DNA from: Heterodontus francisci
Lineage: Eukaryota
Direction of reading: 5' to 3'
DNA length: 64,000 nucleotides
NCBI RefSeq assembly: GCF_036365525.1
Contig: NW_027141721.1
Location: 186,001-250,000, forward strand
Below, piece after piece: positions 12,300-52,994 of the stretch (its first letter is position 1; the number at the start of each line of letters is the position of its first letter). Position numbers and translations under genes: made by a program. The notes under the pieces are model-generated. The model saw only the letters and a list, made by a program, of their open reading frames with translations. It searched no databases and was not told the DNA's origin.

Positions 12300-13430
12300 C
12301 ATTCTTGAGATTTTGGGCGATGCTGCTGGAGGCCAGCATTTATTGTCCATCCTTTTCGCCCCTTGAGAAGGTGGTGGTGAGCTGCCTTCTTGAACTGCTG
12401 CAGTCCATGTGGGGTAAGTACACCCACAGTGCTGTTAGGAAGGGAATTCCGGGATTTTGACCCAGCGACAGTGAAGGAACGGCGATATAGTTCCAAGTCA
12501 GGATGGTGTGTGACTTGGAGGGGAACCTGCAAGTGATGGTGTTCCCAAGGATCTGCTGCCCTTGGCCTTCTAGGTGGTAGAGGTCGAGGGTTTGGAAGGT
12601 GCTGACGAGGGAGCCTTGGTGCATTGCTGCAGTGCATCTTGTAGATGGTACACATTGCTGCCACTGAGCATCGGTGGTGGAGGGAGTGAAAGTTGTGGAT
12701 GGGTGGAGGGAGTGAAAGTTTGTGGATGGTTTGCCAATCAAGCGGACTGCTTTGTCCTGCATGGTGTCGAGCTTCTTGAGTTTTGTTGGAGCTGCACCCA
12801 TCCAGGCAAGTGGAGAGTATTCCATCACACTCCTGACTTGTACCTTGTAGATGGTGGACAGGCTTTGGGGAATCAGGAGGTGAGTTGCTTGTCACAGGAT
12901 TTCCAGCCTCTGTCCTGCTCTTGAAGCCACAATATTTATATGGCTATCCCAGTTCAGTTTCTGGTCAACGGTAACCCTTTAGGATGTTGATAGTGGGGGA
13001 TTCAGCGATGTTAATGCCATTGAATGTCAAGGGGAGATGGTTAGATTCTCTTTTATTTGAGATGGTCATTGCCTGGCACTTATGTGACACGAATGTTTCT
13101 TGCCAATTATCAGCTCAAACGTGGATGTTGTCCAGGTCCTGCGACATCTGAACACGGGCTGCATCAGAATCTGAGGTGTCACGAATGATGCTGAACATTG
13201 TGCAATCATCAGTGAACATCCCCACTTCTGATCTTTTGATTGAAGGGAGTTCATTGATGAAGCAGTTGAAGATTGTGGGACAGGACATACCCGGGGATGG
13301 GGATGACGAGGTGTGTGACATTGTCTGTAAGGCATAATTCCCTGAGTATGACGATGTCAGGCTGTTGCTTGACAGCTCTCCCAACTTTGGCACAAGCCCC
13401 TAAATGTTGGTAAGGAGGATTTTGCAGGTT
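12300..13430 (-). mobile_element. Non-LTR retrotransposon (CR1/L2 group, second family), RT and 3' end
   Basis: IFNCFINELPS..RSEVGMFTDDCTMF and MEYSPLAW..AAPTKLKKLDT.QDKA; 3' end ggccagcatttattg...; related fragments at 22470-23670 and 61420-61575. Confidence 0.75.
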
Positions 13431-17590: not shown

Positions 17591-17720
17591 TATATAGGGG
17601 TTGGAGCTGTCACTGAGACTGACACTGTTCACAGCAGAGTGGACCCGAGACTGAGGAGCAAGCAGCTGGAACTGAACCGACAACATCTCCCACCCAGCGA
17701 CATCTACTTTGGAGACTCTG
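17591..17720 (+). promoter_or_regulatory. TATA box and putative non-coding exon 1 of the D8C gene
   Basis: TATATAG at 17591; strong donor CTG|gtaag at 17720/17721; the next acceptor tttccag at 18169 precedes the ATG at 18185. Confidence 0.6.
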
Positions 17721-18184
17721 GTAAGCAGTCGGGTATGGGAGGAGTGTTAGAAAAAGCACAGGAGTTTGTCATTTGCTAGGTGTTGACCCAGGGGGAATGT
17801 GTCCTGCTTTTCCTGAAACAACACCATCCTCAGTAATAACCTTTGTCAGAAATTCAAAGAGGTTCGTTACAGGAATGCAGGAGACAGACCTGGAGGAGAG
17901 AGTCAGGAACACATGTGGTTTGTTCATAAAAGTTTTGGAGAGTGGAAAGGGTGAAGGATTGGAGTCAAGTTACTGAGGTTTATCAAGAACATATAGTTGA
18001 GCTCACCTCTGTCTGTAGGAGCCACAGTGAGAGAGAGATAGATAGATGGAGCTCACCTCTCTGAACAGATATACTGACAAACTCCTCTTCAACTCCTTAT
18101 TTAATATTCCCTCCAATTGCACGATTCCTTTAGCTCTCTCAAATGTTTGTCTTGTGTTTCCCTTTCCAGAATCTCACCAGTAAG

Positions 18185-21100
18185 ATGTGGACTCTGCTGA
18201 TCATTCTGGGTTACCTGAGTGAGTAACTTTCATTCTCGACAAAGTTCACCCCCAGTACAACTAGAACAAGCTGTGTTTATTCACACCGTTATATAGAATA
18301 ATCTCCCAAGCTGTTGCACAGAAATCTGATGGAAGAAATGTCTGACACGGCAGGGAAGGAGATGATTGGAGGGCTGACTGTTAGTTTAAAAGAGCAGGTG
18401 GAGGTGGAGAGGCAGAAAGGTTTAGGAGGCTGGACATCTTGAAGCCACATCAGACACTGCTGGAGGAAAGGGAGTGGAGGGAAGTTCTACAGGAGGCTTG
18501 GGTCAGAGAAACAGAGAGTTGGTGAAGATTACAGAAATGAGGTGGGAGAGGGAGGAGAGGTCATGAAAGAATTTGAACAGGAAGATGGTAGTTGTACATC
18601 AAAGGCGTTTGCAGCTGTGAACCAATGTGGGTCAGAGAGCACAGGGGTGATGTGTGACTTAAACTTTCTGCAAGATAACATGCAACAGCAGTGTGTTGGA
18701 GGAGACCTGACTTCTGGAAAGTGGAAGCTGGGAGGCTGGCCAGGAGAGGATTAGAAGATTTGATTCTCTAGAAGTTGAGGGTTTTTGGTAGAGGATTGGC
18801 TGAGGCAAAATCTGTGATGGTGGATATTAAGGAGGTTGTAATTGGATGTCCTTGTGATGAGGAGGCGACAGGGAAGGAAGCTGGGCACAGTCGGAAGCTG
18901 ATGAGAAATTGGAGAGGGACAAGATAGATCCTCGGGATACCCTAGAGGTAACAGTGCTGGAGTGGGTAGGGAAGACACTGCAGGAGATTCTCTGCCTGAG
19001 ACTAGACTGGGTAGAGTGGAAATAGGCCAGAGCAGTTCCACCCAACTGGACATGGAAGGAGTGGTGTTGGCGATGGATAGTGTGGTGAATTGTGTCAAAG
19101 GCTGCCGACAATTCGAGAAGGATGATCAGAAACAGTATTCCTGACTTGGCTCTTGCAGCTTCACTGCTGCTCAAACACTTTACCAGTTCTTTGGTAACTC
19201 TAGTAGAGACAGCCCTGGTAATTATAGACCTGTGAGCCTCACTTCGGTTGTGGGTAAAATGTTGGAAAAGGTTATAAGAGACAGGATTTATAATCATCTT
19301 GAAAAGAATAAGTACATTAGAGATAGTCAGCACGGTTTTGTGACGGGTAGGTCGTGCCTCACAAACCTTATTGAGTTTTTCGAGAAGGTGACCAAACAGG
19401 TGGATGACGGTAAAGCAGTGGATGTGGTGTATATGGATTTCAGTAAGGCGTTTGATAAGGTTCCCCACGGTAGGCTATTGCAGAAAATACGGAAGTATGG
19501 GGTTGAAGGTGATTTAGAGCTTTGGATCAGAAATTGGCTAGCTGAAAGAAGACAGAGGGTGGTGGTTGATGGTAAATGTTCATCCTGGAGTTTAGTTACC
19601 AGTGGTGTACCGCAAGGATCTGTTTTGGGGCCATTGCTGTTTGTCATTTTTATAAATGACCTGGAAGAGGGTGTAGAAGGGTGGGTTAGTAAATTTGCAG
19701 ATGACACTAAGGTCGGTGGAGTTGTGGATAGTGCCGAAGGATGTTGTAGGGTACAGAGAGACATAGATAGGCTGCAGAGCTGGGCTGAGAGATGGCAAAT
19801 GGAGTTTAATGCGGAAAAGTGTGAGGTGATTCACTTTGGAAGGAGTAACAGGAATGCAGAGTACTGGGCTAATGGGAAGATTCTTGTTAGTGTAGATGAG
19901 CAGAGAGATCTTGGTGTCCAGGTGCATAAATCCCTGAAGGTTGCTAACCAGGTTAATAGGGCTGTCAAGAAGGCATATGGTGTGTTAGCTTTTATTAGTA
20001 GGGGGGTCGAGTTTCGGAGCCACGAGGTCATGCTGCAGCTGTACAAGACTCTGGTGAGACCGCACCTGGAGTATTGCGTACAGTTCTGGTCACCACATTA
20101 TAGAAAGGATGTGGAATCTATGGAAAGGGTGCAGAGGAGATTTACTAGGATGTTGCCTGGTATGGAGGGAAGGTCTTACGAGGAAAGGCTGAGGGACTTG
20201 AGGTTGTTTTCGTTGGAGAGAAGGAGGAGGAGAGGTGACTTAATAGAGACATATAAGATAATCAGAGGGTTAGATAGGGTGGATAGTGAGCGTCTTTTTC
20301 CTCGGATGGTGATGGCAAACACGAGGGGACATAGCTTCAAGTTGAGGGGTGATAGATATAGGACAGATGTGAGAGGTAGTTTCTTTACTCAGAGTGTAGT
20401 AAGGGCGTGGAATGCCCTGCCTGCAGCAGTAGTAGATTCGCCAACTTTTAGGGCATTTAAGTGGACATTGAATAGACACATGGATTCAAATGGAATAGTG
20501 TAGGTCAGATGGTTTCACAGCTCGGCGCAACATCGAGGGCCGAAGGGCCTGTACTGCGCTGTAATATTCTAAAAAAAAAAATTCTAACTTGACTATTCCA
20601 AAGACCTCCTGGCTGATCTCTCACATTCCACCTTCTGTACATTTTGGTCATCCAGTATGATACTGCCCAAGTCCCGTTCACCTTTCATCTCCGTGCTCAC
20701 TGACCTGCACTGGCTCCCGGTTCAGCAAGGCCTGGATTTCAATATTCTCACAATCGTTTCCAGATCCTTCTATCACCTCGCCGTTCCCTACCTATGAAAT
20801 CATCTCCAGCCCCACAACCCTCGGAGATCTCTGCGCTACTCTAATTCAGGCCTCTTGAATATTCCCGATTCGAATCCCTTCCACCATTGGCAGCTATGCT
20901 TTCACCTGCCGAGGCTTAACGCTATGGAATTCTCTCCCTCAACTTCTCCGTCTCTCCACCTCTCTTTCATCCTTTCAGACACTCCTTAAAACCTACCTCT
21001 TTGACATAGCATTTGGCCACCTGCCCGACCAGCTGCTTCTGTGGATCGGTGTCAGTTCGGGATGGTAACACACCGATGAAGTGCTTTGGGACATTTTATT

Positions 21101-24100
21101 ACATCAAAGGCAGTACATAAATGCAGGTTGTTGTTGGTTTTGAGACTACACGTTCCCTCTCCAGGACCCACCAGTCACACTGGGTCGCTTGTGCTCCACC
21201 TGGCAGTTCTCGCTCCTCCTCCACTTTACATCTTTCCTACTGGGATGAAGTGAAGCTGAGATATTTACTGCTTTCTGCTACCTGAGAGCTGGTGGTTAAT
21301 CCAGAATAGGGAGTACTGTCTGTGAGCAGTGAGTTAGAGGGGGAGGCTGAGCTGGGAGACAGATGGAAACCCAGTTTAGAGAAGGAGGACATTTTCCAGC
21401 TTTAATCTGGGGGGTTTTGACCAGGACGGAGGGTGAAACTGAGATTATTGGTATTTTGGGAGGGTACAAGGCGCTGTGTAACATTAACTGTACTTTATAT
21501 TAACATTAAACATCTTTCTGTCACTCAGTCACAGACTCCACACTCACTGACCCGTGTGTAAATCACACAGTCCTGGACCAGTCCTGGAGGAGCATCGATT
21601 GTAATGAGACTGAGTGCTCTGATCAGGTTAAGTGTGATCAGAATCTTGCTCAAGGATGGTACAGATTTAAAAGGTAATGTAAAGGAACAAATTCTGGGTA
21701 AATCAGTTAATGAGGGAGGAGTAAGGGATTTCCCCCAGTTTCAGGTACTATCTGCTGTTACCAGTCTCTCTAACAGTTAATATTTGCCATCAGTTCAGGG
21801 ACTGACTCTGTGATTGTTGTTTCAGTTCTGGTGGATGGAAGATTCCGGACACTGTTGTCCCAGATAGCCACTGCTCCACACGTGCCACAGGCTGGTTACA
21901 GGGTAATTTCCGTCATAAAAATATCAGATTTTCATTCACTGTCCAGCACTGTTCACGTGGGTTACCTTCTTCAATATTTATAAACTCTCATTTCAGGTTC
22001 CCATCCCAGTGTGGGAAATGGGGAAGTAACGAGGACAGTTTGTTTTAACAAGGCTGGAAATCGCTGTCACTGGACCCAGGAAATAAAGATCATAAACTGC
22101 AGCAGTTATTTTGTTTATGAGTTGAAGCCTCCACCTGACTGTGAAGCTGTTTATTGTACAGGTAGATTGCTGTTTGTATATGGTGCAGATGGGTGATTCT
22201 GGGATGTCCCGTGTCACCCATAGAAATGAGACAGTTTACTCACTGCCCTCCTTTTTGTAAGGGACACAGTGAATAAAAGATCTGTAAAACAGAGTGAACT
22301 CTTCACTAAAACTCTAGGGAACTGAACCAGACGCTCACTGTCTGGAGAGAGGGCTGGCATGTCTGGGTCGTATTCTGTCAGGTCTGCAATTGAGGAGATT
22401 CAGGTTTTCTGGTGAGTATCAGACACAGCAGCAGGATCCTGACAGACTCTATGTGAAGGGCAGTCACTCTCACCTCACCTCTTGAGTTCCACTCTTTTGT
22501 CCATGTTTGAACCACACTGTAATGAGGTCAGGTGCTGAGTGACCCCGGCGGAACCCAAACTGACCATCACTGAACAGGCGATTGCTGAGCAAGTACCACT
22601 TGATAGCACTGTCGATGACACCTTCCATCATTTTACTGATGATAGAGAGTAGACTGATGGGACGGTAATTGGGTGGGTTGAACTTGCCCTGCTTTGACTT
22701 GTCCTGCTTTTTATGTACAGGACATGCCTGGGCAGTTTTCCACATTGCAGGGTAGATGCCAGTGTTGTAGCTGCACTGGAACAGCTTGGCTAAGGATGCA
22801 ACAAGTTCTGGAGCACAGGTACTTCCGCGATATTGTCAGGGCCCATAGCCTTTGCAGTATCCAGTGCCTTCAGTCATTTCTTGATATCAAGCGGAGTGAA
22901 TCGAATTGGCTGAAGACTGGCATCTGTGATGCTTGGGACTGCAGGAGAAGGCCGAGATGTCTCATCAACTCGGCACTTCTGGCTGAAGAATTTTGCAAAT
23001 GCTTCAGCCTTATCTTTCGCACTGATGTGCTGGGCTCCCTGATCATTGAGGATGGGGATGTTTGTGGGGCCACCTCCTCCAGTTAGTTGTTTAATTGTCT
23101 ACTGCCATTCACGACTGGATGTCGCAGGACTGCAGAGCTTAGATCTGATCCGTTGGTTATCGGATCGCTTAGTTCTGTCGATCACATGCTGCTTCTGCTG
23201 TTTGGCATGCAGATAGTCCTGGGTTGTAGCTTCACCAGGCTGACACCTCATTTTGAGGTATGCCTTGTGCTGCACTTTGCATGCACTCTTCATTGAACCA
23301 CGTTTGGTCTCCTGGCTTGATGGTCATGATAGAGTGGGGGATATACCGGACCATGAGGTTACAGATTGTGGTTGAGTACATTTCTGCTGCTGCTGTTGTT
23401 CCCACAGCACCTCATGGATGCCCATTGTTGCATTGCTAGACTTGTTTGAATCTATCCCATTCAGCACGGTGATAGTGCCACACAACACGATGGACGGTAT
23501 CCTCAATGTGAAGGCGGGACTTCGTCTCCACAAGGACTGTGCGGTGGTCACTCCCACCAATACTGTCATCAGCAGATGGTTATGTGGCAGGCAGATTGGT
23601 GAGGATGACGTCAAGTATATTTTCTCCCCTTGTTGGTTCTGTCATCACCTGCCGCAGTCCCAGACTAGCAGCTCGGTCAGGAGTGGGCTGCAGCGACTGA
23701 GGGCAGTGGGATGTAGTGACTGAGGGGAATGAGATGTAGTGACTGAGGAGAGTGGGATGCAGTGAATGTGGGGAGTGGGATGTAGCGACTGAGGGGAGGG
23801 GGATACAGTGACTGAGGGGAGTGGGATACAGTGACTGAGGGTAGTGGGATGTAGTGACTGAGGGGAGTGGGGTATAGTGACTGAGGGGAGTGGGATGTAG
23901 TGACTGAAGGGAGTGGGATACAGTGACTGAGGGGAGTGGGATGTAGTGACTGAAGGGAGTGGGATGCTGTAATTGAGGGAAGTGGGATGCAGTGACTGAT
24001 GAGTAGGATGTGGTAACTGAGGGGAGTGGGGTACAGTGACTGAGGGGAGTGGGATGACGAGACTGAGGGGAGTAGGATGTAGTGACTGATGGGAGTGGGA

Positions 24101-27100
24101 TACAGTGACTGAGGGTAGTGGGGTACAGTGACTGAGGGGAGTGGGATGACGAGACTGAGGGGAGTAGGATGTAGTGACTGATGGGAGTGGGATACAGTGA
24201 CTGAGGGTAGTGGGATGTAGTGACTGAGGGGAGTGGGGTACAGTGACTGAGGGGAGTGGGATGTAGTGACTGAAGGGAGTGGGATACAGTGACTGAGGGT
24301 AGTGGGATGTAGTGACTGAGGGGAGTGGGGTACAGTGACTGAGGGGAGTGGGATGTAGTGACTGAAGGGAGTGGGATACAGTGACTGAGGGTAGTGGGAT
24401 GTAGTGACTGAGGGGAGTGGGGTACAGTGACTGAGGGGAGTGGGATGTAGTGACTGAAGGGAGTGGGATACAGTGACTGAGGGTAGTGGGATGTAGTGAC
24501 TGAAGGGAGTGGGATACAGTGACTGAGGGTAGTGGGATGTAGTGACTGAAGGGAGTGGGGTACAGTGACTGAGGGTAGTGGGATGTAGTGACTGAGGGGA
24601 GTGGGGTACAGTGACTGAGGGGAGTGGGATGTAGTGACTGAAGGGAGTGGGATACAGTGACTGAGGGGAGTGGGATGTAGTGACTGAAGGGAGTGGGATA
24701 CAGTGACTGAGGGGAGTGGGATGTAGTGACTGAAGGGAGTGGGATGCTGCAATTGAGGGAAGTGGGATGCAGTGACTGATGAGTAGGATGTGGTAACTGA
24801 GGGGAGTGGGGTACAGTGACTGAGGGGAGTGGGATGACGAGACTGAGGGGAGTAGGATGTAGTGACTGAGGGGAGTGGGATGTAGTGACTGAGGGTAGTG
24901 GGGTACAGTGACTGAGGGGAGTGGGATGTAGTGACTGAAGGGAGTGGGATGCTGTAATTGAGGGAAGTGGGATGCAGTGACTGATGAGTAGGATGTGGTA
25001 ACTGAGGGGAGTGGGGTACAGTGACTGAGGGGAGTGGGATGACGAGACTGAGGGGAGTAGGATGTAGTGACTGATGGGAGTGGGATACAGTGACTGAGGG
25101 AAGTGGGATGCAGTGACTGATGAGTAGGATGTGGTAACTGAGGGGTGTAGGATGTAGAGATGCGGGGAGTGAGGTGCAGTGAATGAAGGGCATGTTATAG
25201 AGTGATTCGGTGGACTGGGTGTGGTGACATAGAGAAGTGGGATGCAGTGATTGAGGGTAGTAGGAGCAGTGACTGAGGGGAGTGGGATACAGTGACTGAG
25301 GGTAGTGGGATGCAGTGACTGAGGGGAGTGGGATACAGTGACTGAGGGGAGTGTGATACAGTGACTGAGGGGAGTGTGATACAGTGACTATGGGGAATGG
25401 GATACAGTGACTGGGGGGAGTGGGATACAGTGACTGAGGGGAGTGTGATACAGTGACTGAGGGGAGTGGGAAGCAGTGACTGAGGGGAGTGGCATCCAGT
25501 GACTGAGTGGGAGTGGCATCCAGTGACTGAGTGGAGTGGGATCCAGTGACTGAGGGGAGTGTGATGCAGTGACTGAGGGGAGTGGGATGCAGTGACTGAG
25601 GGGAGGGGGATGCAGTGACTGAGGGGAGTGGGATACAGTGACTGAGGGGCGTGTGATACAGTGACTGTGGGGAATGGGATACAGTGACTGAGGGGAGTGT
25701 GATACAGTGACTGAGGGGTGTGTGATACTGTGGCTGAGGGGAGTGTGATACAGTGACTGAGGGGAGTGGGATGCAGTGACTGAGGGGAGGGGGATGCAGT
25801 GACTGAGGGGAGTGGGATACAGTGACTGAGGGGCGTGTGATACAGTGACTGTGGGGAATGGGATACAGTGACTGAGGGGAGTGTGATACAGTGACTGAGG
25901 GGTGTGTGATACTGTGGCTGAGGGGAGTGGGATGCAGTGGCTGAGGGGAGTAGGATACAGTGACTGAGGGGAGTGTGATACAGTGACTGAGGGGCGTGGG
26001 ATACAGAGACTGAAGGAAGTGGGATGCAGTGACTGAGGGGAATGGGATACAGTGACTGAGGGGAGTGTGATACAGTGACTGTGGGGAATGGGATACAGTG
26101 ACTGAGGGGTGTGTGATACAGTGGATGAGGGGAGTGTGATACTGTGGCTGAGGGGAGTGTGATACAGTGACAGAGGGGAGTGGGATACAGTGACAGAGGG
26201 GACTGGGATACAGTGACTGAGGGGAATGGGATACAGTGACTGAGGGGTGTGTGATCCCTTCCATTTATCTTCACATCCTCCTCGCTTTCACTTGTCACTT
26301 GAACTTTTCCCAGTTCTGATGTAAGGTCACATATTAACATTAAACATCTTTCTGTTACTCAGTCACAGACTCTGCACTCACTGACCCGTGTGTAAATCAC
26401 ACAGTCCTGGACCAGCCCTGGAGGAGCAGCGATTGTGATGACACTCGGTGCTTCAGCCAGGTGAAGTGTGATGATGGTCTTCACTTCGGATGGTACCGAT
26501 TTAAAAGGTAATGTAAAGGAACAATTTCAGGGTAATCTCGTCAATATGGGCAGAATAAGGGATTTCCCCTACCTTCTGGTACTATCTGATGGTACCAGTC
26601 TCTCTAACAGTTAATATTTACCATCAGTTCAGGGACTGACTCTGTGATTGTTATTTCAGTTCTGGTGGATGGAAGATTCCGGAGACTGCTGTCCCACATC
26701 ATCACTGCTCCACACATGTTACAAGCTGGTTACAGGGTACTGTCAGCCTTTATAATATCAGATTTACATTCACTGTCCAGCACTGTTCACATGGGTTACA
26801 TTCTTCAATATTTCTAAATTCTCATTTCAGGTTCCCATCCCAGCGTGGGAGAGGGGGAAGTAACACGGACAGTTTGTTTACACTGGGGTACAAATCACTG
26901 CTACAAGGTCCATGAGATAAAGATCAAAAACTGCAGCAGTTACTTCGTTTATGAGTTGAAGTCGTTGTTTCGTTGTGCTGCGTATTGTACAGGTACATTG
27001 ATGTTTCTATATCATTCAGAGGCTGATTCTGGGATATCCTTTGTCACTCACCGAAATGAGACAGTTTACTCGCTCCCCTCCTTATTGAAAGGGACACAGT

Positions 27101-36100: not shown

Positions 36101-39100
36101 CCTAACCACACGCTGTGTGAAAAGGTTTTACTGTCTCTGTTGTAATTTTTACCACTCACCTAAAACCGGTGCCCTCTGGTTCTGGATCCTCCCACCAATG
36201 GGACTTAGGGGTGTGGGGCATAGTTACTGGGGGAGAGGGATGTAGTGACTGAGGGGAGAAGGTTGCACTGACCGAGGTGAGTGGGATATAGTGACTGAGG
36301 GCAGTGGGACATTGTGACTGAGGGCAGTGGGATATAGTGAGTGAGGGGAGAGGGATGTAGTGACTGAGGGGAGTGGGACAGAGTGACTTAGGGTAGTGGG
36401 ATATAGTGAGTGAGGGGAGAAGGATGTAGTGACTGAGGGGAGTGGGACATAGTGACTTAGGGTAGTGGGATATAGTGAGTGAGGGGAGAAGGATGTAGTG
36501 ACTGAGGGGAGTGGGACATAGTGACTGAGGGGAGAGGGATATAGTCATTGAGGGCAGTGGGACATAGTGACTGAAGGCAGTGGGATATAGTGATTGAGGG
36601 CACTGGGATGTAGTAACTGAGCGGAGTGGGACGTAGTGACTGAGGGCCGTGGGATATAGTGACTTAGGGCAGTGGGATGTATTGACTTTGCGGAGTGGGA
36701 TGTGGTAACTGCTGAGAGTGGGATGTAGTGACTGAGGTGAGTGGGATACAGTGACTGAGGGGAGTGGGATACAGAGACTGAGGGTAGTATGATGCAGTGT
36801 CTGAGGGGAGTGGAATACAGCAACTGAGGGGAGTGTGATGCAGTCACTGAGGGTAGTATGATACAGTGTCTGAGGGGAGTATGAAACAGTCACTGAGGGG
36901 AGTGTGATGCAGCGACTGAGGGTAGTGAGATACAGTGTCTGAGGGGAACTTGATACAGTGACTGAGGGTAGTGTGATGCAGTGACAGAGGGGGTGTGATA
37001 CAGTGAGTGAGGGGAGTGTGATACAGTGACTGAGGGGAATGTGATCCAGTGACTGAGGGGAGTGTGATACAATGACAGAGGAAGTGTGATACAGTGACAG
37101 AGTGGAGTCTGACACAGTGAGTGAGGGGAGTGTGATACAGTGACTGAGGGGAGTGTGATGCAGTACAGAGGGAAGTGTGATACTGTGACTGAGCGAGTGT
37201 GACACAGTGACTGAGGGGAGTGTGATACAGTGTCTGAGGGGAGTGTGATACAGTGTCTGAGGGGAGTGCGATACAGTGACTGAGGGGAATGTGATACATG
37301 ACTGAGGGGAGTGTGATACAGAGTCTGAGGGGAGTATGAAACAGTCACTGAGGGGAGTGTGATGCAGCGACTGAGGGTAGTATGATACAGTGTCTGAGGG
37401 GAACTTGTTACAGTGACTGAGGTTAGTGTGATGCAGTGACAGAGGGAGTGTGATACAGTGACAGAGGGGAATGTGATACAGTGAGTGAGGGGAGTGTGAT
37501 GCAGTGACTGAGGGGAATGTGATACAGTGACTGAGGGGAGTGTGATACAATGACAGAGGAAGTGTGATACAGTGACAGAGTGGAGTCTGACACAGTGAGT
37601 GAGGGGAGTGTGATACAGTGACTAAGGGGAGTGTGATGCAGTGACAGAGGGAAGTGTGATACTGTGACTGAACGAGTGTGACACAGTGACTGAGGGGAGT
37701 GTGATGGAGTGACTCAAGGACTGTGATACAGTGTCTGAGGGGAGTAGGATACGGTCACTGAGGGGAGTGGGATGCAGCGACTGAGTGTACTGTGACACCG
37801 TGACTGAGGGGAGTATGATACAGTCACTGAGGGGAGTGGGATGCAGCGAATGACGGTAGTGTGATCGAGTGACTGTGGGGAGTGGAATACATTGACTGAG
37901 AGGAATGTGATATAGTGACTGAGGGAAGTGTGATACAGTGACTGAGAGAGTGTGATGCAGTGACTGAGGGGAGTGTGATGCAGTGACTGAGGTGAGTGTG
38001 ATACAGTGACTGAGGTGAGTGGGATACAGTGAGTGAGGGGAGTATGATATAGTGACTGAGGTGAGTGTGATGCAGTGACCGCTGGGAGTGTGATGCAGTG
38101 ACTGCTGGGAGTGTGATACAGTGACTGAGGGGAGTGTGACGCAGTAATGTAGTGAACAGGATGGAAGATAATGGTTTTATAAAGATTGTTATCTGTCATT
38201 CTCCTGACACGAGCACAATCCTGTTGACCTGATGTGTTTTTCTCCATGTCCCGCTTTGCAATGTCTCCCTCCCTTTAATACAGAACCCGTGACTTCCCAA
38301 ACTCAGGAATCCGAGGAACAATCGACTAGAGAATCTACTGAGGTTTCATCCTCCACCCCAGCGGGCTCTGGAAGCTCAGGTACCTGTCATGTGGGGTCAT
38401 CATCGCAGAATCATGGTATCAGTGACTGGTTACAGCACAGGAAGAGGCCATTGAGCCCATCATCACCTTGACAGCTCTATGCCTGTGCAACTCATCTACA
38501 CCCACTCCTGCAATTTCCCCGTCGCACTGCAGATTATTTCTCCAATGACAATTTTCCAATTCCCTTTTGAAAGCCTCAATTGAACCTGCCTCCAGCACAC
38601 TCTCAGGAAGTGCATTTCAGATCCTAACCACTCGCTGTGTGAAAAGGTTTTCCTGTCTCTGTTGTGACTTTTACCACTCACCTAAAACCGGTGCCCTCCA
38701 GTTCTGGATCCTCCCACCAATGGGACTTAGGGGAGTGGGGCATAGTTAGTGGGGGAGATGGATGTAGTGACTGAGGGGAGAAGGTTGCACTGACCGAGGT
38801 GAGTGGGATATAGTGACTGAGGGCAGTGGGGCATAGTGACTGAGGGCAGTGGGATATAGTGAGTGAGGGGAGAGGGATGTAGTGACTGAGGGGAGTGGGA
38901 CAGAGTGACTTAGGGTAGTGGGTTATAGTGAGTGAGGGGAGAGGGATGTAGTGACTGAGGGGAGTGGGACATAGTGACTGAGGGGAGTGGGATGTAGTTA
39001 CTGAGGGCAGCTGGACATAGTGATTGAGGGCAGTGGGATGTCGTGACTGAGGGGAGTGAGACATAGTGAATGAGGGGAGTGGGATATAGTGAGTGAGGGG

Positions 39101-42100
39101 AGAGGGATATAGTGACTGAGGGGAGTGGGATATAGTTACTGAGGGCAGTAGGACATAGTGATTGAGGGCAGTGGGATATAGTCATCGAGGGGTGCGGAAC
39201 ATAGTGACTGAGGGGAGTGGGATATAGTCATTCAGGGGAGTGGGATATAGTCATTGTGGGCAGTGGGACATAGTGACTGAGGGCAGTGGAACATAGTCAC
39301 TGAGGTGAGTGGGATATAGTGACTGATGGGATATGGATGCAGTGATTGAGGGCAGTGGGAGATAGTCACTGAGCAGAGTGGGTCGTAGTGACTGAGGGCA
39401 GTGGGTTATAGTGACTGTGGGCAGTGGTATGTATTCACTGTGCAGAGTGGGATGTGGTAACTGCGGAGTGTGGGATGCAGTGACTGAGGTGAGTGGGATA
39501 CAGTGACTGAGGTGAGTGTGATACAGTGACTGAGGGCAGTGGGATACAGTGACTGAGAGGAGTTGATACAGTGACTGAGATATTGTGATGCAGTGACTGA
39601 GGTGAGTGTGATGCAGTGACTGCTGGGAGTGTGATACAGTGACAGAGGGGAGTGTGATGGAGACTGAGGGGAGCGTGACGCCGTGACTGAGGGGATTGTG
39701 ATGGAGACTGAGGGGAGCGTGACGCCGTGACTGAGGGGAGTGTGACGCAGTAATGTCGTGAACAGGATGGAAGATAATGGTTTTATAAAGATTGTTATCT
39801 GTCATTCTCCTGACACGAGCACCATCCTGTTGACCTGATGTGTTTTTCTCCATGTCTCACTTTGCAATGTCTCCCTCCCTTTACTACAGAACCCGTGACT
39901 TCCCAAACGCAGGAATCCGAGGAACAATCGACTAGAGAATCTACTGAGGTTTCATCCTCCACCCCAGCGGGCTCTGGAAGCTCAGGTACCTGCCTTGTGG
40001 TGTTATCATCGCAGAATCATGGAATCAGAGACTGGTTACAGCACAGAAAGAGGCCGTTCTGCCCATCGTCACTGTGCCAGCTCTCTGCCTGAGCAACTCA
40101 CCTACTCCCACTCCTGCCATTTCCCCATCTCCCTGCAGATTGTTTCTCCGATGATAATTATCCAATTCCCTTTTGAAGGCCTCAATTGAACCTGCCTCCA
40201 GCACACTCTCAGGCAGTGCATTTCAGATCCTAACCACTCGCTGTGTGAAAAGATTTTCCTGTCTCTGTTGTGACTTACATCACTCACCTAAAACCGGTGC
40301 CCTCTAGTTCTGGATCCTCGCACCAATGGGACTGAGGGGAGTGGGACATAGTTACTGAGGGGAGAGTGATGCAGTGACTGAGGGGAGAAGGTTGCACTGA
40401 CCGAGGGGAGTGGGATATAGTGACTGAGGGCAGTGGGACATAGTGACTGAGGGTAGTGTGATACAATGACAGAGGAAGTGTGATACAGTGACTGAAAGAG
40501 TGTGATACAGTGACTGAGAGAGTGTGACACAGTGACAGAGGGAAGTAGGATACAGTGACTGAATGTTTGGGATACAGTGACTGAGGGGATTGTGATACTG
40601 TGACAGCGGGGAGTGTGATACAGTGACTCCGGGAGTGTGATACAGTGATTGAGGGGAGTACGATAAAGTTACAGAGGGGAGTGTTATACACTGACTGAGG
40701 GGATTGGGAAACAGTGACTGAAGGGAGTGTGATCCAGTGACTGGAGGAGTGTGATACAGAGACTGAGGGGAGTGTGATACAGTGTCTGAGGGTAGGATGA
40801 TACAGTCACTGAGGGGAGTGCGATGCAGCGACTGAGGGTAGTGTGATGCAGTGTCTGAGGGGGATGTGATACAGTGACAGAGGGGAGTGTGATACAGTGA
40901 CTGAGGGGAGTGCGATAAAGTTACGGAGTGGAGTGTTATACACTAACTGAGGGGATTGGGATACAGTGACTGAAGGGAGTGTGATACAGTGATTGAGGGG
41001 AGTGCGATAAAGTTACGGAGTGGAGTGTTATACACTAACTGAGGGGATTGGGATACAGTGACTGAAGGGAGTGTGATACAGTGACTGAGGGCTGTGGGAT
41101 GCAGTGACTGAGGGGAGTAGGATACAGACACAAAGGGGAGTGGGATGCAGCGACTGAGGGTAGTGTGATACAGTGACTGAGGGGAGTGTGATACAGTCAC
41201 TGAGGAGAGGGGAATGCAGCGACTGAGGGGAGTGGTTTACAGTGACTGAAGGGAGTGTGATACAGTGACTGAGGGGTGTGGGATGCAGTGACAGAGGGGA
41301 GTAGGATACAGACACTGAGGGGAGTGGGATGCAGCGACTGAGGGTAGTGTGATACAGTGACTGAGGGGAGTATGATACAGTCACTGAGGAGAGTGGAATG
41401 CAGCGACTGAGGGGAGTGGGATAGAGTGACTGAAGGGAGTGTGATACAGTGACTGAGGGGTGTGGGATGCAGTGACTGAGGGGAGTAGGATACAGTCACT
41501 GAGGGGAGTGGGATGCAGCGACTGAGGGTAGTGTGATACAGTGACTGAGGGGAGTGTGATACAGTCACTGAGGAGAGGGGAATGCAGCGACTGAGGGGAG
41601 TGGTTTACAGTGACTGAAGGGAGTGTGATACAGTGACTGAGGGGTGTGGGATGCAGTGACTGAGGGGAGTAGGAAACAGTCACTGAGCGGAGTGGGATGC
41701 AGCCACTGAGGGTAGTGTGTTACAGTGACTGAGGGGAGTATGATACAGTCACTGAGGAGAGTGGAATGCAGCGACTGAGGGGAGTGTGATAGAGTGACTG
41801 AGGGGAGTGTGATAGAGTGACTGAGGGGAGTGTGATACAGTGACTAAGGGGAGCATTATACAGTGGCTGAGAGAGTGTGATACGGTGACTGGGGGAGAGT
41901 GATACAGTGACTGTGGGGAGTGTGATACACTGTCTGAGGAGAGTAGGATGCAGTGACTGAGGGGAGTGTGATGCAGTGTCTGAGGAGAGTGTGATACAGT
42001 GACTGAGGGGAGTGTGATGCAGTGACTGAGGGGAGTGTGATACAGTGACTGAGGGGAGTGTGATGCAGTGACTGAGGGGAGTGTGATACAGTGACTGAGG

Positions 42101-45100
42101 GGAGTGTGATACAGTGACTGAGGGGAGTGTGATACAGTGACTGAGGGGAGTGTGATACAGTGACTGAGGGGAGTGTGATGCAGTGACTGAGGGGAGTGTG
42201 ATGCAGTGACTGAGGGGAGTGTGATACAGTGACTGAGGGGAGTGTGATGCAGTGACTGAGGGGAGTGTGATACAGTGACTCAGGGAGTGTGATACAGTGA
42301 TTGAGTGGAGTGCGATAAAGTTACGGAGGGTAGTGTTATACACTGTCTGAGGGGATTGGGATACAGTGACCGAAGGGAGTGTGATTCAGAGACTGAGGGG
42401 AGTGTGATACAGTCACTGAGGGGAGTGGGATGCAGCGACTGAGGGGAGCATTATACAGTGACTGAGGGGAGTGTGATACAGTGACTCCGGGAGTGTGATA
42501 CAGTGATTGAGGGGAGTGCGATAAAGTTACAGAGGGGAATGTGATACAGTGTCTGAGGGTAGTATGATACAGTCACTGAGGGGAGTGCGATGCAGCGACT
42601 GAGGGGAGTATGATACAGTCACTGAGGAGAGGGGAATGCAGCGACTGAGGGGAGTGGGATACAGTGACTGAAGGGAGTGTGATACAGAGACTGAGGGGTG
42701 TGTGATACAGTGACTGAAGGGAGTGTGATCCAGTGACTGGAGGAGTGTGATACAGTGACTGAGGGGTGTGGGATGCAGTGACTGAGGGGAGTGCGATGCA
42801 GCGACTGAGGGGAGTGTGATACAGTGTCTGAGGGTAGTATGATACAGTCACTGAGGGGAGTGCGATGCAGCGACTGAGGGGAGTGTGATGCAGTGTCTGA
42901 GGGGGATGTGATACAGTGACTGAGGGTAGTGTGATACAGTCACTGAGGGGGATGTGATACAGTGACAGAGGGTAGTGTGATGCAGTGACTGAGGGGAGTG
43001 TGATGCAGTGACTGAGGGGAGTGTGATACAGTCACTGAGGAGAGGGGAATGCAGCGACTGAGGGGAGTGGGATACAGTGACTGAAGGGAGTGTGATACAG
43101 TCACTGAGGGGAGTGCGATGCAGCGACTGAGGGGAGTGTGATGCAGTGTCTGAGGGGAGTGGGATACAGTGACTGAAGGGAGTGTGATACAGTGACTGAG
43201 GGGTGTGGGATGCAGTGACTGAGGGGAGTGGGATACAGTCACTGAGGGGAGTGGGATGCAGCGACTGAGGGTAGTGTGATGCAGTGACTGAGGGGAGTAT
43301 GATACAGTCACTGAGGAGAGTGGAATGCAGTGGCTGAGGGGAGTGTGATAGAGTGACTGAGGGGAGTGGGATACAGTGACTGAGGTGAGCGTGATACAGT
43401 GAAAGAGGGAAGTGGGATACAGTGACTGAGAGAGTGTGATACAGTGACTGAGAGAGTGTGATACAGTGACAGAGGGAAGTGGGATACAGTGACTGAATGT
43501 GTGGGATACAGTGACTGAGGGGTGTGTGATACTGCAACAGCGGGGAGTGCGATACAGTGACTGATAGAGTGTGATACAGTGACTGGGGGAGAGTGATACA
43601 GTGACTGAGGGGAGTGTGATACACTGACTGAGAGAGTGTGATACAGTGACTGAGGGGAGTGTGATACAGTGACTGGGGGAGAGTGATACAGTGACTGAGG
43701 GGAGTGTGATACACTGACTGAGAGAGTGTGATACAGCGACTGAGGGAAGTGGGATACAGTGACTGAATGTGTGGGATACAGTGACTGAGGGGAGTGTGAT
43801 ACAGTGACTGAGGGAAGTGGGATACAGTGACTGAATGTGTGGGATACAGTGACTGATAGAGTGTGATACAGTGACTGGGGGAGTGTGATACTGCGACAGC
43901 GGGGAGTGCGATACAGTGACTGATAGAGTGTGAAACAGTGACTGGGGGAGTGTGATACATTGACTGAGGGGAGTGTGATACTCTGTCTGAGTAGAGTGGG
44001 ATGCAGTGACTGAAGCGAATATAATGCAGTGACTGAGTGGAGTGTGATACATTGAATGAGGGGAGTGTGAGACTCTGTCTGAGGGGAGTGGGATACAGTG
44101 AACTGAAGGGAGTGTGATACTGTGACTGGGGGAGTGTGATACAGTGACTGAGGAGAGTGTGATACACTGTCTGAGGGGAGTGGAGTGCAGTGACTGAAGG
44201 GAATATAATGCAGTGGCTGAGGGGAGTGTGATACAGTGCCTGAGGGGCGTGTGTTGCAGTGACTGAGGGGAGTGTGATACAGTGCCTGAGGGGCGTGTGT
44301 TGCAGTGACTGAGGGGAGTGTGATACAGCGACTGAGGAGAGTGTAATGCAGTGACTGAGGGGACTGTGATAGAGACTTAGGGCAGCATGATGCTCAAACT
44401 CAGCAATCCGAGGAACAATAGACGAGAGAATCTACTGAGGTTTCATCCACTACCCGAGCGGGCTCTGGAAGCTAAGGTATCTGCTTTGTGGGGTTATCAT
44501 CGCAGAATCATGGAATCAAAGACTGGTTACGGCACAGAAAGTTTCTGTTCAGCCCATCTTCACTGAGCCAGCTCTCTGGCAGTGCAACTCACCTACTCCC
44601 ACTCCTGCCATTTTCCTGTCGCCCTGCAGATTTTTTCTGCCATGACAATTATCCAATTCCCTTTTGAAAGCCTCAATTAAACCTGCCTCCAGCACACTCT
44701 CATGCAGTGCATTTCAGATCCTAACCACTCACTGTGTGATAAGGTTTCCCTGTCTCTGTTGTGACTTTTACCACTCACCTAAATGCGTTGCTCTCTAGTT
44801 CTGGATCCTCCCACCAAGAGGAACAGTTTTTCCCTGACTACTCTGTCCAGTTCCCTCTTGATTATGAACATCTTGCTCAAATCTCGTCTTAATCGTCTCT
44901 TCTCCACGGAGAACAGCCCCAGCTTCTCCGATCTATTCATGTCACTGACGTCCCTCATCCCGGGAACCATTCTGGTAAATCTTCTCTGCACCCTCTCGAA
45001 TACCTTAACATCCTTCCAAAGTATTGACCGCTCTCTCGACCTGTCTTGCCACCTTCAATGATTTGTGCACATGTCCCCCCAGGTCCCTCTGCCCCTGCAC

Positions 45101-47930
45101 CTCCTTTAGAATTGTAGCCTTTATTTTATATTGCCTCTCGTTCGTCCGACCAAAATGAATCACTTCACAATTCTCTGTGATAAATTTCATTTGCCAGTGT
45201 CTGCCCATCCCACCAGCCTGTCTATGACCTCCTGACGTCTATCACTGTCCTCCTCACAGTTCACAATACAACCAGGTTTTGTGTCATCTGCAGAATTTGA
45301 AAGTGTGCCCTGTACGCCCCAGTCTATGTCATTAATATATACATCAGGAAAAACAGTGGTCTGAGCAATATTAGAGAGCAAAGCACAGATGCACAGAGAA
45401 TTAGGAGGGACAGATAACACTGGAGTCGATAAGAGTATCGTATTAGACGGGGGCAGTGGAAGAGGAAAGGAGATAAGCTATAAATTCAGTTTAATGTGTG
45501 TGTATATGGATGCACGGAGAGTGGTAAATAAGGTTGTTGAGCTTCAGGCGCAGATAGCCACGTGGAAATATGATGTTGTGGCAATAACAGGGTCCTGGCT
45601 CTAAGTGGGGCAGGACTGGGTAGTGAATATTCCTGACTACAAGGTGTTCAGGAAAGAGAGGGGAGGAAGGAAAGGAGGAGGGGTATCAGTATTGATTAAG
45701 GGGAACATTGCAGTGCTGTTTTCTTTTCTCTCTCTTGTTCTCACTCATTCCAGATCTCCCTTACTCTTTTCTGTCTCACTCCTGTCGCCTTCCCTCCTTT
45801 TCTCTCATTCCTGCTCTCTGTTGTTCTCTGACTCCACTTTCCCCCTGTCGTTTCGCTGATCACTTTGATAATCTCCTGAATTTTCTCTGTTAGTTTTTTT
45901 TCCTTGTCGGAGTCGTAACTGATTCTGCAGCCGATGATGTCTGGTGTCTCCCCTCGGTAAAGGCTGGTATACATTGATTCAGTGTGTCGAGGGAGTTAGA
46001 TTACATACGAGAGGAGGTTCTGTGTTAAAACACTTCTGTCCACTCATCCAGCGTTCTGAATCCCAGTGAAATTCCTCTTGTCTTTATTTGATCCTCTCAG
46101 ACTCGGGGATTCCGTCTACTCCCGAGGAACCTCCCGACTCCCAGCCTGTTTCTGATGATGGTGGGAACATTTCAGATTCTCCACATTTCAGGAATATTAA
46201 ATCCCTCCTCCTGTCTCAGTCTGGCACAAATATATCAGGACCGAGGGCCTCCAAACAGCTGTGTGATCGTTCTGTGTAGGGAAACCCATCGTTCTCACTC
46301 TCTCTCTCTGCCTTGTCTGTGCTGTCAGACAAGAGTTGCAGTCGCTTGTGTTCAGTCTGAGTGGAATCATTGGGAAACACAGAAACGTAAACGTTCAGAA
46401 ATTCCTTCAGAAATATCTTTGAGCTTCTATCTCACATCCCTCTCTCTCTTACTCTCAGTTTTATCTCTGTCTCTCCTTTATCTGCCTTTCACACGCATAT
46501 ATAAATATATTTCATTTCTGTAACCGCCTCTCTCCGATGCGGGTCTCAGTTTCTCCAGCTCCCTCTTTCGCCTCACTCTGTCTCCCACTCTCTCTGATGT
46601 TCTGTCTCCCTGTCTGTCTCTCTGACTCTCACTTTCTCTCTCTGTCTCTCTCACAGATGCTCTTTGTCTGTCTCTCTGTCTTTGTCTTTGTCAGAGGGAC
46701 AGAGAGCATCAGAGAGAGAGAGAGAGAGTGAGAGTGAGAGACAGAGACAGAGAAAAGGGCAGTGAGACCGGAGTAAACACGGAATGCAAATGATCTCGGG
46801 AGATGGAACAAGAGGCAACAGAGAAGAGAGTGCAGGATAGAGGATGATAACAAAGGGAGGTCAGATTAGAGACAAGACGAGTTGAGATAGAGAGAATAAC
46901 AGAGACAGATGAACAAACGAGTTTATGACAAACTGGAGGAAAGAGAGTTTAAATTAGAGAGGAGAGTTCAGTCGAAATACGTCCCGTGCCCTGTGCTAAA
47001 CTCTGGGTGTGTTCAACCTGTTGATGTTGTGACTGTTGTGTTTAGGTACCAAATACAAGAGGATTAATGTGAAGATCACTTCAATGACTGATCTGGATGA
47101 AGAATCTGCAAAGAGAATCGTTGTGGAGAGGGTGAGAGACTGCACTGTACTGAGGAGAAACACGGGAGACAACAGATCCTCCCTCTCACTGTCTGTATTC
47201 ACTGAATGGGAACTCCAGGTCATTATTTAAACAGCTCTAATTCCCCTCTGCTTATCAACTGGTCCCCCAGATCAGGCTTGTGAGGGGTTGAATGGGCTTC
47301 CTCCTGAGCCTGTGTGAAAGGCTCGAGAGCGGGTGAGGGGGCTGAATGGCCTTCTCCTGTTCCTGTGTAAGAACTCGAAAGAGGGGCTCAGTGGCCTCCT
47401 CCTGTTCCTGTGTAACAGATTCGAGGGGATGAATGGCCTCCTCGTTGTACGGTAACCTCTCTCTGATCTTCCCTCTCACTCACCCCATTCTCTCTTTATG
47501 TCCTTTCTATCTCTGTCTCTTTCTCTGCCTCGCTCACCCACTCTGTATTTCTCTTTCTTTGTCTTTCTTTCTGTCTGTGTCTGTCTCTCCCTCACTGCAT
47601 CTCTGACGACCTCTCGCTCTCACGCCATCTGTTTCTCTACCTCTGTCTCAATCCCTGTAGCTCTCCCACCCTCCCTCTCCATCTCTCCCTCTATCTGAGT
47701 ATCTTTGCCTCACCCTGTCTCTCACTGTCTTGTCCCCACCCTTTCTCCCGATCTCTGTCTGTATCCTCTCTGTCTCTTTCTATTCACTCCTCCCCTTGCA
47801 GTAATACTCATCGTTTCTCCTCTCTGCGATGCAGATGAAGCACATGTTCCAGGATCAGTGTCCACACACGAAGCTCGAATTGGATCCAGAAAACGTTCAG
47901 TGCTCGGCTAGTGCGCCTGTGGAAGTGTGA
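18185..47930 (+). CDS. Secreted GP2/uromodulin-like tandem-D8C protein with repeated S/T/E-rich stalk (multi-exon, ~538 aa if the stop-containing exon is skipped)
   Basis: Phase-compatible GT-AG exons: 18185-18218 (MWTLLIILGYL), 21529-21673, 21826-21902, 21997-22161, 26363-26507, 26660-26736, 26831-26992, 27391-27486, 28195-28284, 30578-30673, 33012-33107, 38284-38379, 39890-39985, 46101-46160, 47046-47131, 47835-47930 (stop TGA). Domain motifs DPC.N.T.LD..WRS, CD..L..GWYRF, WL.G.HP, RTVC, I...NC..YFVY.L, YCT are the D8C signature. The exon chain is a manual model without transcript support. Confidence 0.8.
18240..21140. mobile_element. L2 fragments (18240-19140 -, 19140-19212 and 20586-21140 +) flanking a CR1 insertion
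   Basis: Minus strand LILLELSAAFDT RT motif; plus strand ctctag|acttgactattcc is split by the CR1. Confidence 0.7.
19213..20586 (+). mobile_element. Young 5'-truncated CR1 LINE with uninterrupted RT ORF (423 aa)
   Basis: NYRPVSLTSVVGK, QHGF..GRSCLTNL, YMDFSKAFDKVPH, GVPQGSVLGP, KFADD, no stops; 3' tail gggccgaagggcctg...attctaaaaaaaaaaattcta. Confidence 0.95.
21529..22161 (+). CDS. D8C/D10C domain 1 (3 exons)
   Basis: ITDSTLTDPCVNHTVLDQSWRSIDCNETECSDQVKCDQNLAQGWYRFKSSGGWKIPDTVVPDSHCSTRATGWLQGSHPSVGNGEVTRTVCFNKAGNRCHWTQEIKIINCSSYFVYELKPPPDCEAVYCT; 10 Cys. Confidence 0.9.
22470..23670 (-). mobile_element. Non-LTR retrotransposon ORF2 fragment (same family as 12300-13430)
   Basis: WKTAQACPVHKKQDKS...NYRPISLLSIISK...QFGFRRGHSAPDL; EPTRGENILDVILTN. 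Confidence 0.8.
23690..26255. repeat. 23-bp G-rich minisatellite (CAGTGACTGAGGGGAGTG[G/T]GATA)
   Basis: Direct tandem repeats; they generate the 23-aa periodic minus-strand ORFs. Confidence 0.95.
26363..26992 (+). CDS. D8C/D10C domain 2 (3 exons; tandem duplicate of domain 1 including introns)
   Basis: VTDSALTDPCVNHTVLDQPWRSSDCDDTRCFSQVKCDDGLHFGWYRFKSSGGWKIPETAVPHHHCSTHVTSWLQGSHPSVGEGEVTRTVCLHWGTNHCYKVHEIKIKNCSSYFVYELKSLFRCAAYCT; exon sizes 145/77/162 nt vs 145/77/165 nt in domain 1. Confidence 0.9.
27391..39985 (+). CDS. Array of 96-nt phase 1-1 mucin-like stalk exons (27391, 28189/28195, 30578, 33012, 35762, 38284, 39890)
   Basis: Each has a polypyrimidine tract + acag acceptor (mutated in the 28189 copy), 32 codons such as EPVTSQTQESEEQSTRESTEVSSSTPAGSGSS, and a G|gt donor. 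Confidence 0.8.
28500..29215 (+). mobile_element. CR1 3' fragment
   Basis: LYKTLVRPQLEY, FSLEQRRLRGDLIEVYK, 3' tail gggccgaagggcctgtttccatgctgtat. Confidence 0.9.
35762..35857 (+). pseudogene. Stalk exon copy with in-frame stop
   Basis: CAG>TAG at 35782-35784; the acceptor tract is altered (cattatgacag). Confidence 0.8.
44395..44476 (+). pseudogene. 5'-truncated, stop-containing stalk exon remnant
   Basis: caa act cag caa tcc gag gaa caa TAG ... agc TAA g|gtatc; the acceptor is replaced by minisatellite-adjacent sequence. Confidence 0.75.
47046..47930 (+). CDS. Last two coding exons of the D8C gene (C-terminal module)
   Basis: GTKYKRINVKITSMTDLDEESAKRIVVER|gtgag ... gcag|MKHMFQDQCPHTKLELDPENVQCSASAPVEV*; no hydrophobic TM or GPI signal. 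Confidence 0.7.
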
Positions 47931-52990: not shown

Positions 52991-52994
52991 ATGA

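Follow-up and report, generated by a model that had tools for sequence, protein, structure and literature searches.

The window described here, a stretch of 64,000 nucleotides from Heterodontus francisci (NCBI RefSeq assembly GCF_036365525.1, contig NW_027141721.1, positions 186,001 to 250,000 of the forward strand), contains on its + strand, between 18.2 and 47.9 kb, an intact, real gene that codes for a secreted protein and is a member of an elasmobranch-wide multigene family. Behind a signal peptide, the protein carries two heads of the D10C (D8C) family, a Ser/Thr-rich stalk, and a short C-terminal module. We favor, with a probability of roughly 0.6 and by analogy with known D10C proteins, the reading that this gene encodes a soluble D10C glycan decoy and was duplicated together with neighboring V segments of the T-cell receptor (TCR) type. 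To our knowledge, D10C has so far been understood only as the glycan-presenting head of ZP-polymerizing filaments (uromodulin, GP2, and the omcins of fish); here the head occurs in tandem, with the sequon at the position of GP2 N65 intact, on a mucin-like stalk and without a polymerization or anchoring module. If such proteins are soluble decoys or agglutinins, jawed vertebrates would possess a decoy strategy of greater age and versatility than its mammalian cases imply, and the family would represent an accessible, uncharacterized component of innate defense.

Architecture of the gene and its protein

The exon chain was rebuilt base by base from the ATG at 18185 to the TGA at 47928-47930. It comprises 17 coding exons with AG/GT splice sites throughout, and their phases agree along the whole chain. 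The first-pass annotation of this DNA had proposed a phase-consistent chain, and every element that it listed was recovered at its place with fitting splice sites and phases; its count of up to six intact stalk repeats also proved exact, these being R1 to R7 without the TAG-bearing R5, while R8 is a remnant. The exons were searched one by one, and analyses of a whole protein were carried out on the closest natural paralogue, P0171, instead of the spliced product. The parts of the gene are as follows:

17591 to 17720, + strand: TATA-like motif TATATAGG and candidate non-coding first exon, proposed from sequence only; donor GTAAGC, with its GT at 17721
18170 to 18218, + strand: signal-peptide exon, reading MWTLLIILGYL plus one base (phase 1); acceptor TTTCCAG, donor GTGAGT
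21529 to 21673, + strand: exon a of D10C unit 1, 145 nt, phase 1 to 2, with the DPCVNHT sequon and the variable Cys loop
21826 to 21902, + strand: exon b of D10C unit 1, 77 nt, phase 2 to 1
21997 to 22161, + strand: exon c of D10C unit 1, 165 nt, phase 1 to 1; Pfam D8C_UMOD, 29.4 bits
26363 to 26507, + strand: exon a of D10C unit 2, 145 nt, covered by transcript contigs
26660 to 26736, + strand: exon b of D10C unit 2, 77 nt, covered by transcript contigs
26831 to 26992, + strand: exon c of D10C unit 2, 162 nt; Pfam D8C_UMOD, 36 bits
27391 to 27486, + strand: stalk exon R1, 96 nt, phase 1-1; Ser/Thr in 14 of 31 whole codons
28195 to 28284, + strand: stalk exon R2, 90 nt, phase 1-1, with a shifted acceptor
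30578 to 30673, + strand: stalk exon R3, 96 nt, phase 1-1
33012 to 33107, + strand: stalk exon R4, 96 nt, phase 1-1
35762 to 35857, + strand: stalk exon copy R5, 96 nt, phase 1-1, disabled by an in-frame TAG
38284 to 38379, + strand: stalk exon R6, 96 nt, phase 1-1
39890 to 39985, + strand: stalk exon R7, 96 nt, phase 1-1
44395 to 44475, + strand: R8, remnant of a stalk exon truncated at its 5' end; it contains an in-frame TAG, and its donor is spoiled (TAAGGT)
46101 to 46160, + strand: exon X, 60 nt, phase 1-1, reading (D)SGIPSTPEEPPDSQPVSDD(G)
47046 to 47131, + strand: exon Y, 86 nt, phase 1 to 0, reading TKYKRINVKITSMTDLDEESAKRIVVER; strand and helix of the tail module
47835 to 47930, + strand: last coding exon Z, reading MKHMFQDQCPHTKLELDPENVQCSASAPVEV and then TGA at 47928-47930; hydrophilic end

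The two heads belong to the D10C (D8C) family and share the fold of GP2 and uromodulin, the fold having been tested on P0171. In the window itself, exon c of units 1 and 2 scores 29.4 and 36 bits, respectively, against D8C_UMOD (Pfam PF23283; gathering cut-off 27), and exon c of unit 1 finds uromodulin (E = 4e-8) and GP2 (E = 3.5e-7) among the PDB sequences. P0171 (360 aa) matches D8C_UMOD over two stretches with 75 bits, GP2 with E = 9.5e-25 and 40% identity, and uromodulin with E = 7e-24; in the GP2 alignment, its DPCVNHT falls on DPCQN65YT. In the AlphaFold model of P0171, both heads reach a pLDDT (predicted local distance difference test) of about 90, the stalk is disordered, and the tail helix is of moderate confidence. 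Against the GP2 decoy module as solved by crystallography, the heads superpose with a TM (template modeling) score of 0.80-0.85 and a root-mean-square deviation (rmsd) of 1.2-1.4 Å over 124 columns, in line with a Foldseek comparison to GP2 7P6R (E = 1e-15, TMt 0.84, rmsd 1.4 Å). The claim of two D8C heads made in the first-pass annotation is thus borne out by Pfam on exon c of both units, and the PDB and fold matches agree with it. Each unit contains ten cysteines, and 8 of the 10 of GP2 are aligned with them. The disulfides of GP2 connect C1-C8, C2-C9, C3-C6, C4-C10, and C5-C7; as judged by alignment to GP2 and to uromodulin, the units of the window gene have no Cys at the positions of C3 and C6 and two extra Cys in the variable loop of exon a.

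The heads are followed by six intact stalk exons of 30-32 aa each, composed of 39-48% Ser+Thr, 6-10% Pro, and 10-19% Asp+Glu, a composition that makes the stalk acidic and mucin-like and from which O-glycosylation is predicted. The stalk cassettes are symmetric (phase 1-1), such that any combination can be skipped with the frame kept, and the repeated units to which they belong are delimited by a 23-bp minisatellite and by transposon fragments. Two stalk exons show peculiarities. At the acceptor of R2 (window 28185-28195), the ancestral TTACAG now reads TTACAC, and a CAG 6 nt downstream is used with the frame kept, the resulting 30-aa exon being also present in the RefSeq paralogue model P0127. 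Downstream of R6, the GTCHVGSSSQNH extension that is used in the model XP_067884563.1 is open here too. The chain ends in a tail module of about 60 residues, made up of a strand, an amphipathic helix, and two Cys. It is conserved in Heptranchias (cow sharks), Heterodontus, lamniform, carcharhiniform, and orectolobiform sharks, skates, and rays; a search by the tail module alone gave matches only among the Heterodontus paralogues, and the ESM Atlas contained no meaningful look-alike. A homodimer prediction for two tail copies (P0171 residues 298-360) scored 0.10 (mark 0.32) and gives no verdict either way.

The modules that accompany D10C in its better-known carriers were sought in several ways. 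In eight family members, D8C_UMOD is the only domain that Pfam finds above cut-off, with neither ZP nor EGF, and none of the domains typical of gel-forming mucins (VWD, CysD, and cystine-knot) was found in family members by the same means. Ten open stretches downstream of the stop codon have no Pfam match, and tblastn of two EGF- and ZP-bearing frog uromodulins against the 64-kb window hit the six D10C exons and nothing else. As judged by hydrophilicity, neither a hydrophobic tail of the glycosylphosphatidylinositol (GPI) type nor a transmembrane segment was found, the protein ending in ...DPENVQCSASAPVEV followed by the stop. Because the ZP module, the EGF domains, the GPI signal, and the β-hairpin that precedes D10C in GP2 were all looked for and are missing, the protein is not a ZP glycoprotein of the GP2, UMOD, or omcin type. 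The first-pass annotation had envisaged a secreted protein free of ZP module and anchor, in which two heads sit on a Ser/Thr-rich stalk and a short C-terminal module follows, and this picture is supported by the exon phases, Pfam, the PDB and fold matches, the uromodulin tblastn, the hydrophilic C-terminus, the architecture of the RefSeq paralogues, and spliced contigs.

The stalk exons sit among minisatellites and fragments of long and short interspersed nuclear elements (LINEs and SINEs), and transposon sequence has been included in some of the RefSeq paralogue models. On that ground, the exon chain could be no gene at all and have arisen by chance or from repeats; this explanation, to which we assign next to no probability, is refuted by 17 phase-consistent exons, significant D10C homology, relatives in many species, and spliced transcripts.

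An elasmobranch family, expressed and spliced

A library-wide HMMER search with exon c returned 1065 D8C proteins, the closest being predicted ones from cartilaginous fishes. Among them, XP_067884563.1 (P0010) of Heterodontus francisci matches best; it agrees with the window gene at 10/11 positions of the signal peptide, 21/21 of exon X (its residues 393-413, 100% identical), 29/31 of exon Y, and 30/31 of the tail. A second search yielded the Heterodontus paralogues P0171, P0174, P0177, P0127, and P0167, together with relatives in about 20 sharks, skates, and rays. P0171 is 70-93% identical to the D10C and R1 exons of the window gene and about 87% on exon Y, whereas R2 is 100% identical to the matching part of P0127 and R4 to a stalk repeat of both P0174 and P0177. 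Overall, the RefSeq models of Heterodontus and of the other sharks and rays have the same architecture as the window gene, with 70-100% identity exon by exon; none of the Heterodontus proteins found is identical to the window copy, which is therefore a further paralogue. The relatives bear automatic names such as 'uncharacterized', 'uromodulin-like', 'GP2-like', 'OIT3-like', and 'mucin-5AC-like', and some of them include transposon sequence. The gene had been called cryptic in the first-pass annotation, a description that does not hold, as RefSeq already contains predicted members of the family from Heterodontus francisci and many other cartilaginous fishes, though the window copy was not among the proteins found. 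No publication on the elasmobranch family came up in a literature search covering D8C, uromodulin-like proteins, and the TCR beta (TRB) locus in sharks.

Members of the family vary in their parts. The number of D10C heads per protein ranges from 1 to 5, and there are at least three C-terminal modules: type A, which is that of the window gene, type B (...EECE.MI..VQVLY.GQN...LPCK), and type C (...IKLVIKFMGHVGVEVMQNIILELQLSLKNRFPDVDLHLSI). The models P0167 and P0174 contain stretches that match antisense LINE or other repeats of the window (44792-44974 and 227-442), and these are probably annotation artefacts and not coding exons.

Expression was assessed with transcript contigs from three runs of one sample in one study. 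The contigs were aligned to a repeat-free 1.3 kb (26256-27573) that avoids the minisatellites, so that junctions outside it are known from overhangs only. They cover exons a2, b2, c2, and R1, and every intron bin is empty; the contigs are therefore RNA. The joint c2-R1 (26992|27391, with GT..AG) occurs in two runs, and the junctions reproduced in all are SP-a, a-b, b-c, c1-a2, c2-R1, R1-R3, and R1-Y, SP being the signal-peptide exon. In one contig, the last 30 letters of the signal-peptide exon, with 1 mismatch, are spliced onto an 'a' exon; in others, the end letters of a1 are joined, exactly matched, to a 'b' exon, and those of b1, likewise exact, stand before a 'c' exon. A contig in which the last 31 letters of c1, all exact, continue into a2 places both D10C units in one transcript. 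Within the stalk, R1 is joined to the first 14 letters of R3 in one contig and is also spliced directly to exon Y (letters 47051-47080, exact). These contigs demonstrate expression of the family, splicing at the predicted sites, and the skipping of stalk exons. A 205-nt continuation past R1 in one contig is absent from the window and belongs to a paralogue.

Whether the window copy itself is transcribed is a separate matter. The overhang letters match the window exactly at a1, b1, c1, R3, and Y, whereas the contig over c2 has 10 mismatches in about 155 nt (~93-94% identity) and therefore stems from a paralogue. Since many letters are common to the paralogues, the contigs are not assignable to the window copy as opposed to a near-identical paralogue. 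Hence, the RNA-seq check that had been suggested confirmed the splicing of the junctions and did not tie them to this copy. The c2 contig would fit a window copy that is a silent or decaying duplicate in a tandem array of which only the paralogues are used, as would the failure to find a RefSeq model identical to its exons, the disabled state of R5 and R8, and the fact that the neighboring V upstream is a pseudogene. We consider such decay improbable, given that 15 further coding exons have open frames, fitting phases, and canonical sites for splicing, that R5 can be skipped without a change of frame, and that contig overhangs match the window copy exactly at a1, b1, c1, R3, and Y.

A proposed glycan decoy and its alternatives

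The favored reading, that of a soluble glycan decoy, draws on a glycosylation site of GP2. In human GP2, N65 (peptide DPCQN65YTLL) carries an oligomannose glycan bound by the bacterial adhesin FimH, and mutation of N65 abolishes the binding (PMC8930769). At the corresponding position, both units of the window gene read DPCVNHTVL, an N-x-T sequon that is kept in the family consensus. The signal peptide leads directly into two tandem D10C heads, which are followed by the acidic stalk and the tail of about 60 residues, and the protein would be secreted in soluble form, heavily O-glycosylated, and not as a filament. Because both heads keep the sequon at the FimH-bound glycan site of GP2, the protein probably acts outside the cell, in a secretion, where it would present glycans to microbial lectins as a decoy or agglutinin, with the length of its stalk varied by exon choice and copy number. 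Its link to the V array would be one of co-amplification, as with the trypsinogen genes in the mammalian TRB locus. A mucosal-defense role and a functional tie to the TCR locus, as raised in the first-pass annotation, remain hypothetical.

Comparison with the known systems shows how far the analogy reaches. The decoy module of human GP2 (PDB 7P6R/7P6S/7P6T; PMC8930769) has the same D10C fold and the sequon at the N65 position. In contrast to GP2, the window protein is devoid of the β-hairpin, EGF, the ZP module, and the GPI anchor, appears from the alignment to lack the C3-C6 pair and to have two extra Cys in a variable loop, and possesses two tandem D10C domains, a mucin-like stalk, and a new C-terminal module. 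Uromodulin (UMOD, PDB 7PFP/7Q3N) has a homologous D10C domain and differs from the window protein in its N275 sequon, its EGF domains, and its ZP polymerization module; with the latter absent, a filament of the UMOD type is not expected. The nearest functional precedent is given by the omcins of teleosts, omc1-15 of zebrafish, a tandemly expanded fish family with several D10C per protein that has been called teleost-specific and in which omc5, inducible by E. coli, confers protection from infection (PMC11415648). Omcins share with the window family the lineage-specific tandem expansion and the multiple D10C per protein. They differ in that they retain EGF IV, the ZP module, and a predicted GPI anchor, have neither the mucin stalk nor the tail module, and have not been reported next to TCR V genes.

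Several observations weigh against the glycan decoy. The β-hairpin N-terminal to D10C is absent, the first ~31 residues of the GP2 construct having no counterpart, because the signal peptide leads almost directly into the first cysteine, with ~6 residues before the first Cys of unit 1 and ~8 between the units. In GP2 and UMOD, this hairpin makes up the other wall of the glycan groove, which preserves the high-mannose state of the glycan. A counterpart of the UMOD N275 sequon is missing too, the sequence there being FVYELK. In addition, the D10C heads differ most in surface loops, which is also compatible with direct protein-ligand recognition, and the transcript data, as described, are of a single sample and include a c2 contig from a paralogue. 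The heads are thus D10C domains, the larger half of the decoy module, but not the full bipartite module. The 'decoy' module named in the first-pass annotation is incomplete here, its β-hairpin half being absent.

How the two heads have diverged bears on the same question. Between units 1 and 2, the exons are 78-87% and the introns 85-87% identical; dN is 0.19, dS 0.32, and dN/dS 0.61, with an intron divergence of about 0.15. Replacements, both between the units and among the Heterodontus paralogues, are concentrated in four patches, of which one is the Cys loop in exon a, one lies midway along exon b, and two are loops encoded by exon c. One transcript contig is identical to the window up to 26423 in exon a2 and then departs from it completely within the exon-a Cys loop, indicating that the paralogues differ most there. 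This pattern, to go by the sequence comparison, fits relaxed or patchy diversifying selection and establishes neither.

An alternative that takes these loops as its starting point would see the heads as germline-diversified binding domains, a lectin-like or pattern-recognition repertoire in which ligands are recognized by the variable loops and the conserved glycan is incidental. The clustering of replacements in four patches, the exons being no better conserved than the introns between the units (dN of 0.19 versus about 0.15), and the departure of the contig exactly inside the exon-a loop would all agree with it. We nevertheless hold it to be unlikely, as dN/dS remains at 0.61 and is not above 1, the excess of dN over the introns is small and concerns few sites, the core and the sequon are strongly conserved, and D10C protein surfaces have no known ligand.

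A signal peptide, Cys-rich heads, and a mucin-like stalk are generic for secreted glycoproteins, and GP2 itself is a zymogen-granule protein. The protein might thus serve a non-immune purpose, be it in structural or lubricating mucus, as secretory-granule cargo like GP2, or in a reproductive or egg-case secretion. The retention of the N65 sequon, the fast change in copy number, and the diversification of the heads are more typical of host-microbe interfaces, and the related omcins of teleosts confer resistance to bacterial infection (PMC11415648), which makes a non-immune role rather improbable in our view. A bolder reading, which we put forward as a long shot, is that elasmobranchs may carry a large, fast-duplicating repertoire of soluble D10C proteins, diversified in loops, head number, and spliced stalk length as a germline innate recognition or decoy system, with its expansion mechanically tied to the TRBV array through shared cassettes.

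V segments, the duplicated cassette, and repeats

Three V segments were identified in the window, one upstream and two downstream of the gene:

11462 to 11830, - strand: V pseudogene upstream of the gene, comprising leader, intron, and the beginning of the V exon; it carries a TAG and two deletions of 1 nt each
60396 to 60710, - strand (entry 60357 to 60710): exon of an intact TCR-beta-like V, ending YFCAWSL, with a recombination signal sequence (RSS) with a 23-bp spacer (CACAGTG ... ACAAAAACA)
63334 to 63636, + strand (entry 63334 to 63680): exon of a second, open V, ending YYCAWSL, with an RSS with a 23-bp spacer

Both downstream segments have a V-set exon with the conserved Cys, Trp, and Y-x-C in addition to the RSS. 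They lie ~3 kb apart in opposite orientations and diverge from each other. The best PDB match of the - strand V is in the beta-chain half of a single-chain TCR, with several TCR beta chains next; a protein search with its exon returned no candidate, so its 'beta' label rests on the PDB matches and motifs. For the + strand V, PDB matches to V domains of the antibody light-chain type are about as good as those to TCR beta, and this segment reads WYPW where V domains usually have WYRQ. The upstream pseudogene breaks off after 'MFYS', where the 3' end of a LINE (11089-11472) truncates it. The statement in the first-pass annotation that TRBV segments stand on both sides of the gene thus holds for the two open segments downstream, while on the upstream side there is a frameshifted, LINE-truncated pseudogene. 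No D, J, or C elements were found in the window.

Positions 1-2010 of the window match 48578-50533 (89-92% identity), and 11462-12476 match 60534-61574 (86%), the upstream pseudogene thus being the counterpart of the intact - strand V at 60396-60710. From these self-matches, it follows that the gene lies in a tandemly repeated cassette of ~48.6 kb that includes V segments. The co-location of the gene and the V segments is most simply explained by tandem co-duplication and not by functional coupling. Mammalian TRB loci offer a parallel, as trypsinogen genes are interspersed among their TRBV segments and have been co-duplicated with them. In that case too, unrelated genes for secretory proteins stand among TRBV and were duplicated together with it. 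The trypsinogen genes are of a different protein family, and the window is distinguished by a regular cassette of ~48.6 kb with V segments in between. Regular co-duplication with TCR V segments would make the family a useful marker of V-array growth.

The window as a whole is vertebrate DNA rich in LINE fragments and minisatellites, one of which pervades the gene:

23680 to 26255, no strand assigned: 23-bp minisatellite of about 112 copies, located in the intron that separates the D10C units
27574 to 28004, 29675 to 30439, 32528 to 32872, 34957 to 35623, and 36222 to 44371: the same 23-bp minisatellite among the stalk exons

Long - strand open reading frames (ORFs) at 23580-26264, 36156-37550, and 42848-44167, of up to 894 aa and repeating SVTVSHSPQSLYHTPLSHCITLP, are not genes, because they are nothing but an in-frame reading of the 23-bp minisatellite GGAGTGGGATGCAGTGACTGAGG, whose repetition (3 x 23 bp) yields a period of 23 aa. 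An open LINE reverse-transcriptase stretch of 452 aa (RVT_1, E = 8.5e-36) is located in sense orientation (19145-20500, +) in the intron that separates the signal-peptide exon from D10C unit 1. Other minisatellites flank the V segments: an A/C-rich one with units of 36-38 bp (6259-6976, 56933-57348, and 58563-59242), a G-rich one with units of 37 bp (13678-15128 and 51674-52524), and one with 33-bp units whose copies match 92% (52988-53652), some of which recur at matching positions of the cassette.

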